DNA of 64,000 nt from sequence record NC_028999.1. One strand, 5' to 3'. How positions within the stretch are numbered: position 1 is the first letter of the stretch; each line of letters begins with the position of its first letter. Below are positions 5,798 to 57,645 of this stretch, piece after piece. Under the pieces are notes generated by a model, which was not told the DNA's origin, made no database searches, and saw only the letters and a list, made by a program, of their open reading frames with translations. Position numbers and translations under genes: made by a program.

Positions 5798-7096
5798 ATG
5801 ATGAGCAACAAAAATCGCAACAGAACTTTCAACCTGGCTGACGTCCAAAAGGGTGCAGTTACTATACCGGAATCCAAAGTGGGTACTGAAGCCGCTGTAG
5901 AGATCCCGGAAACCACTACCGCTGCGGTTGATCTGGAAGACCCTAGCTCTGAGAGCTACAATGATGACAAAGCGGTCACTCACGAACTGCCCGACGACGA
6001 CAAAAGCGAATCTGACGCTGGCGATCCTGTCGACAGTGATCAAGATGTTTCCGAAGGCACTGAAGAACCGGCATCTGTGGATGTAAGTGATCTCCCGGTA
6101 GAAACTGTCACTGAAGAGTCGCCTCAGGTACGTGATATCAACCAACTGGCTGTTGGCGAATGGACGCTTGAAGAACTCGAATCGTACATTGATGGTTCTT
6201 TCGGTAACATCTATCGTTCGAAGCTGGAAGATGTTCTGGAAGAGCATCGCCGGCGCGTTGAGAAACTCGACCATGCTTGGTCGCTGCAAGAGTGCCGAGA
6301 GTTCCTTACCCAAAATATCATCCCGGAGAAGACCTCCACTGGGGCTTGGAAGAACGACGTTACTCGTGCCCTGCGTCGGCCGGGTAGTTGGACTACTCAA
6401 GAACTCGAAGCGTGGGCGCTGGGTGAGATCAAAGCTGTAGGCCTGTCCACCAATGCCGAACTGGCGATTGAACTGAAAGATCGTTTGGGCCTGCAAGTAA
6501 ACACCGTTGATCCGGATAACGTGATCAAGGCTTACAAGGTCCGTACCGGTAACGGTCTGTCCACTGTAGTTCAAGAACACACTGGATCTGTTCCGACCAT
6601 TGCTACCCAAGCCCTGTCCACCGAAGCGAAAGCTGAAGCGGTCGCTGCCATTACTTACCAAGGACTCACTCCCGTGAACCAGAGCTACATTGAAAACACC
6701 CTGAAAGAATACGCAGCTGCGGTAGCGGTCAACAAGCCGGTTACGCCGGAGAATGGCCTACGTGCTCAGAAAGCACTGGACAACCTGCTGCGTTACGTAA
6801 TCAACCTGCAAGATCCGGCCGGCTTCAAATCTGGTATGGATATCATCCTGAATTTCGTTCGTGCAAACCGTGGTCCGCAAGGCGTGTTCAACGACACTTA
6901 CGCCTTCCGTTTCACTGAGAACCTGACCATGCAAAATGGGATTCAGGAATCTCACATTAACCTGATCACTCTGTTTAACGTCTACGCCAGTGAGAATCGC
7001 GAAGCTCGTGCGCAGGCCGATATCCCGACTCTGATCGCGCTGTTCCCCTCGAACAAGCACTCTCTGCTGCTGCAATATTTCAGCAAAGTCGCCTAA
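5798..7096 (+). CDS. conserved phiKZ-like hypothetical protein with acidic N-terminus and W[TS]xxE repeats
   Basis: Start MMSNKNR; motifs WTLEELE, WSLQECR, WTTQELE. Confidence 0.8.
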   Translation: MMSNKNRNRTFNLADVQKGAVTIPESKVGTEAAVEIPETTTAAVDLEDPSSESYNDDKAVTHELPDDDKSESDAGDPVDSDQDVSEGTEEPASVDVSDLPVETVTEESPQVRDINQLAVGEWTLEELESYIDGSFGNIYRSKLEDVLEEHRRRVEKLDHAWSLQECREFLTQNIIPEKTSTGAWKNDVTRALRRPGSWTTQELEAWALGEIKAVGLSTNAELAIELKDRLGLQVNTVDPDNVIKAYKVRTGNGLSTVVQEHTGSVPTIATQALSTEAKAEAVAAITYQGLTPVNQSYIENTLKEYAAAVAVNKPVTPENGLRAQKALDNLLRYVINLQDPAGFKSGMDIILNFVRANRGPQGVFNDTYAFRFTENLTMQNGIQESHINLITLFNVYASENREARAQADIPTLIALFPSNKHSLLLQYFSKVA

Positions 7097-7130
7097 CATA
7101 CTGCCCCTCCTTCGGGAGGGGCCTTATGCT
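7097..7130 (+). terminator. stem-loop terminator
   Basis: GCCCCTCC-TTCG-GGAGGGGC with ACATA and TTATGC flanks. Confidence 0.8.
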
Positions 7131-7164
7131 GCAATCCTATGTTACGTAATTGATGGTGAATACC

Positions 7165-8700
7165 ATGTTTGAATTATTGCTAGGTGCTAGATTAGCTAGA
7201 CCTCCATTGGTTGATAACCGCTTTATCGGAGAAGTAAGTCCTTCTTCGTTTATTACCGCAAGCGCTTTGGCTAGTGCAGTCGGCCTATTAGCTGGAGCAA
7301 ACGTTAATGATGCTATCCCATGGTTACAATTTCGTTTTAATGGCAAGGACTATTACACCCCCAAAAAAGCCATTCGACACACAATTAGCTGGGAAGCATT
7401 AAATTCGGCGAGTCTGATCACTGGGAATAAACTAACCAAAATTGCCTCTAAGTTTTATTCGGTTAGGTTGTTTAAAGGAGCTAGCGTTAATCCGGTAACG
7501 GTTACGAGTGGTTATGACCTGGTACAGTTCCAAGGTTCAGAATGGAACAAATTCATGTACCATATCCACGGCCCTAGCTTCGCTAACCCAAGCAACACAA
7601 TGGCATCTGAACCCCTTGCTGGTGAGTGGGCTCAATACAGTGATGCTGACTTGGGTTTAGGGTATCCCGCTGATGGTGGCGCCGCTACATGGACACAAGA
7701 ACTCTACACCAAATCTGGTGATGCTACTAAGTATGCCGTGTGGCGCGGATACAATGGTGTGTCTTACTGTGGTTATGACGTATCTAACCTGGCGAGTCAG
7801 AGTTATGCTGGATGGCGCCCATTGTTGGAGCAAGTGGCCGATACATTCAAACCGACTGTCAAGACCATCGCTAGTGAAGCGATGGGTAATGGTTGCTGGT
7901 TTGTTTGGAACAACGACATTTATTTCGCTGGCGGTAACGGGTCTCAACAAACCGCAAGGATTATAAAAGTAGATAAGACAACCGGTGCCAGGACGGCTGT
8001 TCCTGTTGGCACGGGGTCTACACCGGCAGCGACATGGTACTGGTCATGTGCAGTTATTGGAGATAAGGTATATTTCTTTGGCGGTCAATCAGCTGCTGGT
8101 TCTGCAAACGCAGCTCAAAATGCCTGTGTGTTCGATATGGTGACACAGGTATGGACCACCCTTGCAAATCTTCCTGAAAAATTATACAGGCCCCGTGTAG
8201 CGGCGATTGGTACTAAACTCTACATCTACGGTGGTGGACTGGTTACTCCTCGCGACACACTGTACGAATATGATCCACAAGGTAACACCTACGTCAAGAA
8301 AGCTCATGGCGGTGAAAACGCATCGGATACAGCTGGACTAGCTGTGACCTCAGACGGTACTTACCTGTATGCCTGTGGTGGTTACTATAATGCCATGTCT
8401 AACAAGCTGAAGCGTTATAACCCAACATCTAATACCTGGGATGTCCTCCAAGCAGCACCTGTAGCCAACTACGAGAATGGTATTGGAATAGCTGGTGACA
8501 TTCTGTTGTCGGTAGGTGGTACTGGGACCAATATGGGACAAAAGGTATACATGTACCTGTTCTCTAAAAATGCGTGGGTGGATACAGGTATAACCCTACC
8601 ACTTTCTTATGCGACGGCGTATTCAACTGTTCTGAATATAGACGGAAAATGGTACGCATTCTCCCAGCAGAATGCATCCCTTGGAGAAATTGGTGGCTGA
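7165..8700 (+). CDS. virion structural paralog with C-terminal Kelch beta-propeller (putative tail/receptor-binding)
   Basis: MFELLL start; family motifs WLQF, EWNKFMY, ADLG, GWRPLLE; Kelch repeats (YFFGG, YIYGG, YACGG, LSVGG). Confidence 0.8.
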   Translation: MFELLLGARLARPPLVDNRFIGEVSPSSFITASALASAVGLLAGANVNDAIPWLQFRFNGKDYYTPKKAIRHTISWEALNSASLITGNKLTKIASKFYSVRLFKGASVNPVTVTSGYDLVQFQGSEWNKFMYHIHGPSFANPSNTMASEPLAGEWAQYSDADLGLGYPADGGAATWTQELYTKSGDATKYAVWRGYNGVSYCGYDVSNLASQSYAGWRPLLEQVADTFKPTVKTIASEAMGNGCWFVWNNDIYFAGGNGSQQTARIIKVDKTTGARTAVPVGTGSTPAATWYWSCAVIGDKVYFFGGQSAAGSANAAQNACVFDMVTQVWTTLANLPEKLYRPRVAAIGTKLYIYGGGLVTPRDTLYEYDPQGNTYVKKAHGGENASDTAGLAVTSDGTYLYACGGYYNAMSNKLKRYNPTSNTWDVLQAAPVANYENGIGIAGDILLSVGGTGTNMGQKVYMYLFSKNAWVDTGITLPLSYATAYSTVLNIDGKWYAFSQQNASLGEIGG

Positions 8701-12541: not shown

Positions 12542-12885
12542 CCATACCTTCGATAGAGTTCGTTATGCTCTACCCGCGTTTACACGCTGCTCCAGGCTTT
12601 CCCTGGATGTGGAGACTATATCACCATCCTTCTCTTTCGAGGATCGGATGCTTCCTATTTCCACCCACTTGGATGTACTCCCTTACGGGATAGTCGTTGA
12701 ACGTTCTTCTCAGAGAGAAGCTTCGCTGCGGATTGCCCAATACATGTGTCTTTTACCATACCCAGTGAGTTAGACTGGCCATCTAGTATATCGCTATCTA
12801 GACTTGGTGCACATGTCTCTAAGGATTTCCCCGTCAATTAAAGAAGTTTGCATCAAGTGTTCCAACTTGATGGGACTAATATTTA
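12542..12885 (-). ncRNA. group I intron (IA2-like), ORF-less, 344 nt
   Basis: U|UAA 5' splice site with P1 U.G pair; Q AAUCCGCAGC, R GUUCAACGACUA, S GAUAUAGUC; P7.1/P7.2 helices; terminal G; splicing restores the reading frame. Confidence 0.9.
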
Positions 12886-53671: not shown

Positions 53672-53746
53672 CTTGAGACCTCCTTTTCTCTTGTTCTACC
53701 ATGACCATTACAGCACGACATAGCGCCTGCATGTCTCTTACTTGAC

Positions 53747-54130
53747 TCATACATCCCCCAACGCTAAACGAACTAGGTCGTCGACGTCTAAATCCCAAAA
53801 GATACGGTTAAACCCAACACAGTCACACCACGCATAATCTCCATCGGGCATTGGCCAAGGTTTCTGGAAGACTTCAACCAGTACATTGTAACGCAGGTAC
53901 AGTTCATGAATCAGACCTTCACGACGCTCATTAACTTCAGCTTCAGAGATCTGATCGATTGGCCACGGGAATCCATTAGAGAGTTCAAACGAAACACTAG
54001 CAATCAGATTACGGATTGCAATAAGGTTCTGACTCGTTGAGTAAATCCGGATGGCCGTAGGACGCCTTTCCCTGGCGTTAAAAAGAATGTAGTTCTTGAT
54101 GCCTGACATCAAGCTGTCGATTGCCGCCAT
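53747..54130 (-). CDS. hypothetical protein
   Basis: AAGG RBS; 127 aa. Confidence 0.7.
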   Translation of the reverse strand: MAAIDSLMSGIKNYILFNARERRPTAIRIYSTSQNLIAIRNLIASVSFELSNGFPWPIDQISEAEVNERREGLIHELYLRYNVLVEVFQKPWPMPDGDYAWCDCVGFNRIFWDLDVDDLVRLALGDV

Positions 54131-54185
54131 TTATTCTTACCTTGTAAGGGATTGAATAAAGCCTCCCCGAAGGGAGGCCCTACTA

Positions 54186-54554
54186 TTAATTAGACCAAGC
54201 GTCATCGTCCATACCACCGATAATGCTACCCGGAACAATTTTGAGCGAGTAGTCTTCTTCTTTATCGATGTCCCATGGGATAATGCCACACGAACTGAAC
54301 GGCAGAAGAACATATTGGTCTTCTTCAGACGTCACAGTGTTCCGGTGCTTACCCCGTTGGATGGCGAGATACGATTTGCCTTTCACTTTGATGATGTGGT
54401 GGAACAGTTCTAGGTCAGGTTCCTGACCCAGTCGACGGCAACCGTCATAATAGCCTTTGTTGGCTACAACCTTCACGAAGTCTTCGGTGTTCTCCCGCAT
54501 GAGCTGGAGGGCATCAGAGCCGAGCTGGTGAGGACTGATAAACGTGATACCTCT
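54186..54554 (-). CDS. dnaB: DnaB-like replicative helicase, exon 2
   Basis: RGITFISPHQL (motif H3), then SKGKHR-like RGKHR and LLPF..GIIPWD; in frame with exon 1 after splicing. Confidence 0.87.
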   Translation of the reverse strand, partial: RGITFISPHQLGSDALQLMRENTEDFVKVVANKGYYDGCRRLGQEPDLELFHHIIKVKGKSYLAIQRGKHRNTVTSEEDQYVLLPFSSCGIIPWDIDKEEDYSLKIVPGSIIGGMDDDAWSN

Positions 54555-56344
54555 CGATGTGTTCAGTAAGGTTCGTTACACCTTACCCGCGCCATTATGC
54601 GCAGCTCCAGGCTTTCCCTGGATGTCCAGACTATATCTTCACCCTCGGTTTCCCGATAGGGTGCTTCCCACTTCGAGTTCACTTGAACTCTACTCCCCAC
54701 TACGGGATAGTCGTTGAACCTTCTCCGTGCCTTTCGGTTTAGGAGCTTGGCTGCTGATTGTCCAATTTCTACACTTGTTAAACCTTCATAGACTCCTTTC
54801 GGGTCTATTGTGGTAGTAGAACTCTGAAGGAGTTTCCAGCAATTCAGGAAGTACTCGTAAAGCATTACGGCTTTACGGCCCTAAATAAGTAACCCTTAGT
54901 TTCCTTATTAGTGCTCAGATTTAATCGAATTGTTTTCTCGTTTAGACCGGTTAGACGAGCTGCTTCTTTAATAGAAGCAACCTCAGTTATAACACCGGTA
55001 TTCACGCAGGTAACCAGAATGGCTTTAGCTTGTATTGGCTTGTCGATATACGCCGAATTATCGTACTTATTCGAATCCGTGCGGATTATCCAACGCTTAG
55101 CGTAGATGTATTTCAATCCACGACTTAGGTCGACTTGCAACTCCGCTTTAGATCTCCCACAGTGATTCGCTATCTCCTGTAAAGTAGCGAAGACATGGAG
55201 AGTATTCGTTTCTAGATCACTTACGTAGTAAGGTCCAGACAGATTATTCCTACTGTAATGAATTTCACAGTGCGGAACATGCTCTTTAAAACGAATGACG
55301 AAGTTGTCGATGGTTTCGAACCGATATGGTATTCCATACGCTGTCGCAATCTGTTTTACACGATTGAACTTCCGGCTCTGTCCAGTCCGCGTATCGAAAA
55401 CCGTTATGGTGAATATCGATTTACCAACTTTAAAATCGTTTATATCAACTGTTTCGTAATGCCATGGTGTTAAGTCATCCATGGTTTTTATTTCATACCG
55501 CTTGCCCCAAAGATAACCAGGCAGTTTAGTTTGAAAACTTACAGTTGAGTTACCTACACCAATACCGAGACTTCTGTTCATCTCGCTAATGGACCTGTAC
55601 GCAGTAACTTCTCCAGTTAGGACATCCCTAACCTTCGTACCAATAGGTGTTCCATTAAGACCGACTTCCAATGCATGCTGTGCATTTTCCGAAGCATCAC
55701 ACCATTCTAGGTTAGATACGTCGTTATTGGTCTTAACTCCATCAATATGGTTAACGAGCGGTCTTTTTACGAAACATTCGTTTGGAACCCATGCCAAAGC
55801 TACTAACCGATGAAATTTTACGGTACGATTGCAATTTCGATCGGGTACTCTGATATAACACGTGTAGTAACCTTTATCATCGAGTTTCACATCCGTGATA
55901 ATCGAATTCGTTTTGGTATCTAGCACATGCCCATTGGTATCAATAGCGTATCTTGGGTAGTTTGGTATATGCCTGAACCCATCGCAGTAGTAAATCGGTT
56001 CTGCGAATGTCATTATCTTTCCGCACCTTATTCTCAAAAGCGTGTTGTCCACGTCTTTGAAAATTATTTTGTCAAGGTGTTGGGATAGATTGGGAATGTC
56101 TTCACATTCGTACCAAGCAAGTAGACTGAGCCACTCGACTGTGACTGTATACTTTTTACCAAATAGAACGATATTAACTAATCCATTCTCTTCCGGTAGG
56201 GAAACATGTTTCCCCAATCGGTCAAATATTTGACCGTTTAAATCAATTCGGTATTCTGAACTACCAGGAATCTTTTTAATCACAGCCACACCCCAAGTTA
56301 AAAAATCAACTATAGGATATCTGTAATTAAAGGTAGGTAATTTA
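54555..56344 (-). mobile_element. group I intron (IA2-like), 1790 nt, encoding an HNH endonuclease
   Basis: CCU|UAA 5' splice site; P AAUUGCUGGAAA, Q AAUCAGCAGC, R GUUCAACGACUA, S GAAGAUAUAGUC; terminal G at 54555. Confidence 0.9.
54865..56289 (-). CDS. intron-encoded NUMOD4-HNH homing endonuclease
   Basis: IPNYPRYAIDTNG (NUMOD4), HRLVALAW, NHIDGVKTNNDVSNLEW, C-terminal NUMOD1-like SIKEAARLTG. Confidence 0.9.
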   Translation of the reverse strand: MAVIKKIPGSSEYRIDLNGQIFDRLGKHVSLPEENGLVNIVLFGKKYTVTVEWLSLLAWYECEDIPNLSQHLDKIIFKDVDNTLLRIRCGKIMTFAEPIYYCDGFRHIPNYPRYAIDTNGHVLDTKTNSIITDVKLDDKGYYTCYIRVPDRNCNRTVKFHRLVALAWVPNECFVKRPLVNHIDGVKTNNDVSNLEWCDASENAQHALEVGLNGTPIGTKVRDVLTGEVTAYRSISEMNRSLGIGVGNSTVSFQTKLPGYLWGKRYEIKTMDDLTPWHYETVDINDFKVGKSIFTITVFDTRTGQSRKFNRVKQIATAYGIPYRFETIDNFVIRFKEHVPHCEIHYSRNNLSGPYYVSDLETNTLHVFATLQEIANHCGRSKAELQVDLSRGLKYIYAKRWIIRTDSNKYDNSAYIDKPIQAKAILVTCVNTGVITEVASIKEAARLTGLNEKTIRLNLSTNKETKGYLFRAVKP

Positions 56345-57511
56345 AGGAGTGGTATAGTTCCTCATGCGACGGAACAGCAGACGAATATCATCACCTGCTA
56401 CTTTCGCATCCAGACCAGTCTTTGGTAGCATGTTCAGGTAGTCAACCATCAGCATCTGGATTTCGTAACCCTGGGACTGGAGACCATCAAGGTAGTTGGT
56501 GAAACCACCAATGGTAAATTCAGTCGGGTCAAAACGGATCATCTTAACGTTGAAACCGTTCTCTTGCAGACGTGCACAGACATAAGCCGCAGCTTCTCGT
56601 TTGTCGATGTCAGCAACAATGATCTCTTCACCCGTTTCATTCTCACGGATATACTTGTAAATAGTTAGCAAGTTATCAGAGATTTCGTTTTCCAACGTAA
56701 CAAACAGCAACAGAGGCTTCTTCGTCTTGTCACGCATGAACGGACGGTTAAACAGAGCGATGTGCGAGAACAGCAACATTAGCATGTATGACTTGAAGTT
56801 GTGTTGCAGAGCCGCAGTGGTGATAAACTCGCCTCGACGAAATGCCCCCAAGCTACCCAGGATACGGTTAAATCCTTTCCAACCTGTTTTGAATGCACCG
56901 TCAGCAGACAGAGTAGTCTGTACCTGCTCAAAGAAATCTTCTACTGCTTCAGGCTCACTGAAGTCCAAGCAACCCATTTCAGCTGGGTGTCTACTTTCAG
57001 CACGCGCTTTGACATACGGATCGAGCTTAGCGCCCATCTCGTTAATAGCACCAGCGATATCGCCACTACCGCCACGGTTGAAAAGAAGCTTCTGCGAATA
57101 CTCTCGAACGATCTGCTTGATCTTTTCATCATTGAGGTGTGCGTTCAGCGCACTGCGACGAGAGTTGATAGCCCGCATAATGGACATCCCGTCAGGGAAA
57201 TCCTCTTTTACGCCATTGACTACCGCTTCGTACAGATAGTTTTCTTCCCGGCAACTCACTTGTACGGCTTGTAGAACTTCCGCCAAACTCGGGAAATCGT
57301 GCTTTGCTTTACTGTTCAGATCACCGACGAGCTTACGTAGTTCTAAGAACGTTTGCCGACCATGGTCGTGGTCAACAGTGGTATCACGGACTTCCAGTGT
57401 ATTGATGATTTCCGATATCAGTTCAGTTGATGGTGCAGCAGGAGAATCTTCACGGTGTTCCAAGCACAGCAGGGTAACACACTGTACGAGCAGTTGTTTC
57501 GGGGAGGACAT
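56345..57511 (-). CDS. dnaB: DnaB-like replicative helicase (phiKZ gp118-like), exon 1
   Basis: GWKGFNRILG, FRRGE, divergent Walker A ALQHNFKS, VTLEN, Walker B MVDYL; spliced product about 511 aa. Confidence 0.9.
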
Positions 57512-57645
57512 TTACAGCATCCTTGAGTGTGAATTTTTTAATGATGTACCGTGTACCATTTTGTTTCTAGGTAATTTGTCGCTAAAAATAATGCATATTC
57601 CTATGTAGACTGTTTTTAAGCCTTGGTCCACTATAGGTCTTACCG

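Follow-up and report, generated by a model that had tools for sequence, protein, structure and literature searches.

A putative mobile group I intron with an HNH endonuclease in dnaB, the replicative helicase gene of phage PhiPA3

We found that in the nucleus-forming Pseudomonas jumbo phage PhiPA3 the essential gene for the DnaB-like replicative helicase, dnaB, is interrupted by what we judge, with a probability of about 90%, to be a mobile group I intron encoding an HNH homing endonuclease. The analysis concerned a stretch of 64,000 nucleotides (nt) of record NC_028999.1, referred to as the window (record positions 62001-126000; a window coordinate is the record coordinate minus 62000). Window 53700-57600 is identical (100%, strand unchanged) to positions 115700-119600 of the PhiPA3 records HQ630627.1 and NC_028999.1, and the helicase locus adjoins the gene for the major head protein. 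All PhiPA3 features below are given in window coordinates and lie on the minus strand. The element belongs to an ordinary class of selfish element; at its site in dnaB it is undescribed in the literature searched, and the analysis added its metagenomic lineage and the position of its open reading frame (ORF) inside the P1 helix of the ribozyme. Harm to a competitor by an intron endonuclease was first demonstrated in PhiPA3, and a homologous enzyme at another essential gene is an obvious next candidate.

The interrupted helicase gene and its intron

Exon 1 of dnaB (56345-57511, 389 codons, annotated as gp134) ends in RRMRNYTTP, with CCT as its last codon and U (56345) as its last base; TAA comes directly after it (56344-56342). 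The reading frame picks up at 54554 with AGA GGT ATC (RGITFISPHQL...), preceded by G at 54555, and continues through exon 2 (54189-54554, 121 codons plus stop, annotated as gp131). Exon 1 was identified by Pfam PF20307 (divDNAB), PHROG 3213, protein alignment and annotation, and exon 2 by translation, PF20307 and annotation. Exon 1 matched positions 1-239 of the divDNAB profile (E = 7e-98, 328 bits; cutoff 26 bits) and exon 2 matched positions 240-350 (E = 7e-48, 163.5 bits), the second match being the unbroken continuation of the first. The exons abutted without gap or overlap in a protein alignment that included the uninterrupted helicases of PS119XW (512 amino acids, aa), Phabio (510 aa) and phiKZ (491 aa), and DNA alignment agreed. 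A preliminary description, made from the sequence alone, had proposed that a group I intron with an HNH endonuclease splits the helicase at 56344-54555, and that removing this interval joins RRMRNYTTP to RGITFISPHQL and restores one helicase. The analysis confirmed these coordinates exactly, and both proposals are fully supported, the first by the Rfam match and endonuclease homology described below and by exon abutment, the second by the consecutive Pfam matches and the homologue alignments. The single restored protein was expected to have about 511 aa; the exact count is 389 + 121 = 510.

In the orthologous locus L198, exon 1 residues 205-377 matched positions 2-156 of the 255 positions of Pfam DnaB_C (27.6 bits, cutoff 27). 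Therefore, the junction falls within the RecA-like ATPase domain and immediately precedes the strand-plus-sensor segment ITFISPHQ, which we take to be DnaB motif H3; this is consistent with the preliminary description, which had this motif restored by removal of the intron. Searches of PDB sequences with both helicase pieces returned chance antibody matches or nothing. The tryptic peptides NYTTPR and GITFISPHQLGSDALQLMR would be obtainable solely from a spliced message.

The interrupting element (54555-56344) is 1790 nt long; it begins with UAA, which is an in-frame stop for exon 1, and ends with omegaG at 54555, which gives it the canonical U(-1)...omegaG boundaries of a group I intron. Rfam RF00028 matched at 54900-54607 with 83.1 bits (gathering score 50, E = 1.3e-19) over the full model (1-253), while PS119XW, phiKZ and Phabio, whose dnaB has no intron, gave zero Rfam matches at this locus. 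In eight orthologous loci where the core is present, the match scored 65-106 bits, and in all six orthologues with a mapped 3′ end a terminal G stood directly ahead of the exon 2 codon.

The catalytic core (54566-54851; P3 to P9.2, including P5, P6/P6a, P9 and P9.1) was delineated from the Rfam alignment and a consensus fold of six orthologous introns, in which 38 of 69 pairs showed compensatory changes. The fold placed P3 at 54851-54846/54669-54664, P4 at 54841-54836/54757-54752, P8 at 54663-54658/54645-54640 and P9.2 at 54586-54581/54571-54566. It also contained P7.1 (54707-54704/54697-54694) and P7.2 (54687-54685/54680-54678), both with compensatory changes and both located between P7 and the 3′ strand of P3. 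The pairing of GACUA (54712-54708) with UAGUC (54633-54629) is presumably P7, as judged by motif. Since P7.1 and P7.2 are both present, the intron appears to be IA-like, the subgroup to which the T4 td and SPO1 introns belong. MFE (minimum free energy) and duplex folding of a shortened intron were uninformative, and proteogenomic supplements scanned for the intron coordinates contained no match.

The endonuclease reading frame in the P1 loop

The preliminary description had placed the endonuclease between P1 and the core, and this has to be revised: in 12 orthologous introns the guide sequence (54886-54879 in PhiPA3) lies within the last codons of the endonuclease ORF. The 5′ strand of P1 (56340-56347) consists of exon CCU and intron UAAAU, with a U.G wobble at the splice site (56345); the 3′ strand, which is the internal guide sequence (54879-54886), reads AUUUA.GGG. 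In the pair table of the 12 orthologues, positions -3 to +1 and +3 were paired in every case, including the splice-site wobble, and the pair at exon position -3 was C-G in eight, G-C in three and U-A in one. This register paired 77 of 84 cells, compared with at most 60 of 84 when it was slid by 1-3 positions, and the P1 columns of the Rfam model fell on the equivalent of 54886-54879 in every locus. The guide sequence lies ~15 nt ahead of the endonuclease stop codon, and the two strands of P1 are ~1.45 kb apart. P2 (54855-54878) is a hairpin that holds the stop codon (54867-54865) in its loop; in the RNAalifold consensus of the 12 orthologues it had a nine-pair stem, with eight of the nine pairs kept via changes on both sides. 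The reading frame thus takes up the P1 loop, and its final codons also serve as guide sequence and P2.

Two other candidate guide sequences were rejected. The stretch GGGUGUGG at 56293-56286, upstream of the ORF, can pair at seven of eight positions with the exon end in PhiPA3, but orthologues lack this pairing; the stretch is instead the 3′ arm of the hairpin, described below, in which the start codon of the endonuclease is paired. GGGAGU at 54697 is the 3′ strand of P7.1 and is present in the DNA polymerase intron of PhiPA3 too.

The ORF itself (54865-56283, 472 aa plus stop) encodes an HNH homing endonuclease similar to I-HmuI. A mechanical ORF listing gave 54865-56289; we set the start to the second in-frame GTG (56283), because orthologues begin with MIKK or MFKK there, and a GGGG Shine-Dalgarno sequence (56294-56291) lies seven bases ahead of it. 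The protein is composed of two N-terminal NUMOD4-like modules, the HNH domain and NUMOD1/helix-turn-helix repeats. It matched Pfam HNH_3 (26 bits, cutoff 24.8), NUMOD1 and the I-HmuI NUMOD-like family, as well as PHROG HNH families, among them PHROG 59. Across 42 orthologues with 38-68% identity, H158, R159, N178, H179, N191, E193, W194 and N200 were invariant and H203 nearly so. Over its catalytic half the enzyme is 30% identical (E = 4e-21) to gp210, the endonuclease of the intron in the virion RNA polymerase (RNAP) beta gene of PhiPA3, and H179 aligns with gp210 H82; the H82R mutant of gp210 does not nick (PMC11620839). The AlphaFold2 model had a pLDDT (predicted local distance difference test) score of 87.9. 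The sole significant PDB match was I-HmuI (1U3E), both by sequence (E = 0.006, 20% identity) and by Foldseek (E = 5.9e-7, probability 1.00, 180 columns, template modelling score normalised to target 0.46). The gene is intact, and we infer that the enzyme is of the I-HmuI/gp210 type.

The 5′ part of the P1 loop is predicted to fold into a hairpin (56275-56331; MFE -22.9 kcal/mol, z = -4.5) that covers the Shine-Dalgarno sequence and the GTG start (56283-56281). Eight of 11 orthologues had a start-region fold with z of -2.7 or lower. In seven of these eight the 3′ arm reached the start codon, as read by eye from the structures, and in the remaining one (L201) it fell ~1 base short. The hairpins are built from differing sequences in each orthologue, and RNAalifold found no consensus for this part of the loop, where the alignment is poor. 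By analogy with T4 I-TevI, the hairpin is likely to exert translational control over the endonuclease. Two motifs recur in this region (56326-56309 in PhiPA3; also in L028, L031, L034, L035 and L198), an AAAUUAC-like sequence, which pairs with the start-codon region, and then YUAUAG near the hairpin tip.

The public annotation of the locus differs from this arrangement. On the minus strand the record lists gp134 ('DnaB-like replicative helicase'), gp133 ('putative endonuclease'), gp131 ('DnaB-like replicative helicase') and gp130. The gp133 label is attached to a spurious ORF of 100 aa (54563-54865) that overlaps the Rfam RF00028 match; it matched no Pfam family, and its sequence covers the ribozyme core. 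The 472-aa HNH ORF is without a feature in both public records ('annotated features: none'), and gp131 as annotated begins at ATG 54500, 18 codons inside exon 2. Thus, the label 'putative endonuclease' sits on a false ORF and the real endonuclease is absent from the records. PhiPA3 is a model nucleus-forming phage, and the misannotation misleads the design of knock-downs, proteomics databases and core-genome counts. The preliminary description had also taken the dnaB intron to be unreported. The literature searched, which did not include the 2011 genome paper, indeed contained no dnaB intron in PhiPA3 or other chimalliviruses; however, the split was implicitly noticed earlier, because the GenBank entry of 2011 already has two pieces marked as helicase and one as 'putative endonuclease' there.

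Distribution, mobility and alternative explanations

Among 290 phage records with this helicase, 285 gave a continuous match to a 121-aa probe spanning the junction. Two of the remaining five are the PhiPA3 records, split at the site, and three were left unplaced; with these three set aside, PhiPA3 is the only cultured carrier so far. No other carrier of the dnaB insertion was found in IMG/VR. A search of 5.8 billion proteins returned 58 near full-length relatives of the endonuclease (92-100% query coverage, 28-68% identity) and three more at ~80% coverage, almost all from metagenome assemblies. Orthologous clusters of the enzyme number ~50 in metagenomes. Orthologues obtained by protein search were followed to their contigs, and all 11 that were looked up (at least 37% identity) lay at the identical dnaB site on contigs of uncultured chimalliviruses. 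Each of these loci had a divDNAB exon 1 of 384-415 codons, exon 2 where the contig continues, and an adjoining phiKZ-type capsid gene; the intron TAA followed directly after ...N[YF]xx[PA], and [RK][GK]I... opened exon 2 behind a G. The next relatives (29-32% identity) lie in group I introns of RNAP beta genes. This gap in identity, from at most 32% to at least 37% in the dnaB group, sets apart a clade confined to dnaB; intron and endonuclease thus form a dnaB-specific lineage that is common in uncultured chimalliviruses. The ~50 clusters, with 11 of 11 looked up at one site, provide material for the study of homing dynamics, and also of an ORF that shares its sequence with a ribozyme guide helix.

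When DnaB exon 1 was used to build a tree, alleles with and without the intron interleaved, with at least 4-5 changes of state: L033 was sister to Phabio, L028 and L197 grouped with 201phi2-1, and PhiPA3 stood beside PS119XW. Homing is indicated because of this interleaving, and the pattern fits repeated horizontal homing and loss of the intron. The similarity of the endonucleases exceeded that of DnaB exon 1 in 59 of 66 pairs (85% versus 74% for L028 and L033).

We propose the following mechanism. As the sequence shows, the dnaB gene is transcribed as one pre-mRNA, in which exon 1 ends at the UAA formed by the first three bases of the intron; the ribozyme core is complete. P1 forms over ~1.45 kb by pairing of CCU/UAAAU (the slash marks the splice site or, in DNA and protein, the insertion site) with AUUUA.GGG, and the RNA would splice itself in two guanosine-initiated transesterifications, restoring the mRNA for the 510-aa helicase. 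The 472-aa enzyme would nick intron-less dnaB near ...AAC TAY ACN NCN CCN/CGN GGN ATY..., and repair from an intron-bearing genome would copy the intron into the nicked allele, i.e. homing. The hairpin over the ribosome-binding site and start codon may keep translation of the endonuclease low or timed. Because the end of the ORF overlaps the guide sequence and P2, translating and splicing one molecule would be mutually exclusive, a conflict that may be relaxed by transcription in the ribosome-free phage nucleus.

Several points weigh against this interpretation. Splicing, nicking and the position of cleavage are all predicted from sequence. P1 is short (three exon base pairs and 3-5 intron pairs), and P10 is weak, with 3-4 possible pairs as judged by eye. 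Conservation of the guide could in part reflect protein constraint, as the ...F-R-A end of the enzyme is encoded by the same bases; the three pair types at position -3, however, argue for RNA pairing over protein constraint. No co-conversion tract was seen beside the site, mismatches being evenly spread, although co-conversion would be undetectable here because the closest intron-plus/intron-minus pairs are just 76-84% identical in exon 1 DNA. Fast evolution of the DnaB N terminus also weakens, for distant pairs, the argument that the endonuclease is more conserved than its host gene.

A mobile intron might do more than home. The enzyme might serve as a weapon, nicking dnaB of co-infecting relatives (phiKZ, PS119XW-like and 201phi2-1-like phages) and giving PhiPA3 an advantage; such relatives would be too diverged for repair by recombination, and the result would be a competitive gain. 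We consider this extension possible but unlikely. It draws on the homology to gp210, which nicks phiKZ gp178 (PMC11620839), and on the target, which is essential and conserved: RMRNYTxP/RGITF is identical across Pseudomonas chimalliviruses except for x (T or A). Moreover, PhiPA3 is the sole cultured carrier, so every known relative has an empty site. However, at the DNA level phiKZ shares just 34 of 48 bases with the joined flanks of PhiPA3 and PS119XW 39 of 48, and the phiKZ nucleus keeps native gp210 out (PMC11620839), so import would matter; the homology to gp210 makes a weapon plausible. Somewhat more doubtful still is the joint proposal that the enzyme is a second intron-borne nuclease weapon, directed against chimallivirus dnaB, and that splicing in a ribosome-free nucleus allows or favours the placement of the ORF in P1.

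An improbable alternative is that the intron is fixed and immobile, i.e. that the ribozyme splices and the endonuclease is inactive or repurposed, for instance to aid RNA folding. The lack of a second cultured carrier is compatible with this, as is the unusual length of the enzyme (472 aa, compared with 174 aa for I-HmuI), with its extra N-terminal module. Yet the catalytic HNH residues are invariant across the 42 orthologues, the intron is patchily distributed among close relatives, and endonuclease similarity exceeds that of the host gene; HNH enzymes are also not known to act as maturases. A truly split helicase, in which polypeptides of 389 aa and about 104-121 aa assemble without splicing into a working enzyme, accords with the two helicase coding sequences (CDSs) of the public records but is very improbable given the complete, high-scoring group I core with covariation, the canonical U/G boundaries, a P1 that pairs with the exon, the absence of a start codon at the exon 2 junction (the earliest ATG comes 18 codons later, so that ITFISPHQ would be lost) and the identical layout in 12 diverged lineages. 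A homing group I intron thus remains the interpretation that we prefer.

The searches yielded further observations on the insertion site and the contigs. In PhiPA3 the nearest Arg codons on either side of the insertion, both within 15 nt, are AGG (56358-56356) and AGA (54554-54552). These are two of the three rare AGR codons in PhiPA3 dnaB (AGR makes up 6 of 107 Arg codons in four genes), and CGN stands at both places in all six intron-less alleles examined. The flanking AGR codons could be a remnant of donor co-conversion, or could confer self-protection. Contigs L028, L033, L198 and L200 end ~80-300 nt past the endonuclease stop codon, inside the ribozyme core, which probably means that assembly was broken by similar intron cores within one genome. 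The metagenome contigs L023 and L026, a pair breaking near the site, were rejected as evidence of an intron, the site in L026 being uninterrupted, and scans with HNH patterns of the Joint Genome Institute (JGI) metagenomes and IMG/VR gave, among the matches listed, generic HNH genes with 25-62% local identity. Just downstream of dnaB on the uncultured chimallivirus contig L034 lies a gene of the TnpB/IS605 OrfB type (Cas12f-like; 5972-7177, minus strand), and in Phabio (NC_062582.1) two places match dnaB exon 2.

Related introns and known systems

PhiPA3 contains a second group I intron within the window (12551-12885, 335 nt, no ORF; Rfam 71.7 bits), in the DNA polymerase gene gp085. Exon 1 of gp085 corresponds to positions 3-496 of PHROG 3011, and the 81 codons that follow the intron (12550-12305), which are unannotated in the record, correspond to positions 497-571. 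P1 of this intron is an ordinary short hairpin, GGAU/UAA...UUAGUCC. Introns of PhiPA3 have been described in gp65-66 and at gp210 (PMC10643120, PMC10449902, PMC11620839), and a DNA polymerase intron has been described in Goslar (PMC13648698).

The closest known system is the gp210 intron of the virion RNAP beta gene (PMC11620839), which also occurs in PhiPA3, is of the same intron family (Rfam 67.8 bits) and has a similar core. By inspection, its ORF likewise begins a short way past the 5′ splice site and stops just short of P2; a candidate guide, ACA.GUC, lies inside the end of the ORF, as in the dnaB intron. The two differ in target (RNAP versus dnaB) and in the size of the enzyme (330 versus 472 aa), the dnaB-intron enzyme being longer by ~100 residues at its N terminus, where it has a second NUMOD4-like module, and richer in repeats at its C terminus. 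Furthermore, nicking and a competitive effect have been shown experimentally for gp210 (Birkholz et al. 2024, PMC11620839), whereas for the dnaB-intron enzyme nicking is predicted and a competitive effect is speculative.

The RNAP beta introns of Klebsiella phage phiKp_32 and of a 241-kb metagenomic phage (P0055) encode endonucleases that are 29-32% identical over the full length and share the layout of ORF followed by core; they differ in that the interrupted gene is RNAP beta and not dnaB. In phiKp_32 (L008, 1122-5058; Rfam 51 bits) and in L036, a group I intron that encodes a related HNH enzyme of 457 aa interrupts RNAP beta. The phiKp_32 exons match PHROG 3295 positions 3-402 and 403-696, and the three CDSs are annotated as hypothetical proteins. 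We rejected the phiKp_32 flanking genes as candidates for DnaB; they have no similarity to it and are RNAP beta.

I-HmuI, the nicking HNH enzyme from the DNA polymerase intron of Bacillus phage SPO1 (1U3E), resembles the PhiPA3 enzyme in the order of its parts (HNH, then NUMOD/helix-turn-helix modules) and in its setting, a phage replication gene interrupted by a group I intron, but it has 174 aa and is 20% identical to the PhiPA3 enzyme. The ORF of I-HmuI lies in a peripheral loop of the core and not in P1. The T4 td intron is likewise a phage group I intron in a gene of DNA metabolism, and a hairpin sequesters the ribosome-binding site of its endonuclease, I-TevI; in T4 this hairpin is also known to contain a promoter. 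I-TevI, which belongs to the GIY-YIG enzymes and cuts both DNA strands, is encoded in the P6 loop. The PhiPA3 dnaB intron shares with this system a hairpin, in its case predicted, over the endonuclease start, but has an HNH enzyme and an ORF in the P1 loop. Finally, DnaB inteins, such as those of cyanobacteria and Rhodothermus, are also selfish elements that bring a homing endonuclease into a replicative helicase, within its ATPase domain; they, however, splice as protein and keep one reading frame, whereas PhiPA3 dnaB has an immediate in-frame stop and an RNA ribozyme.

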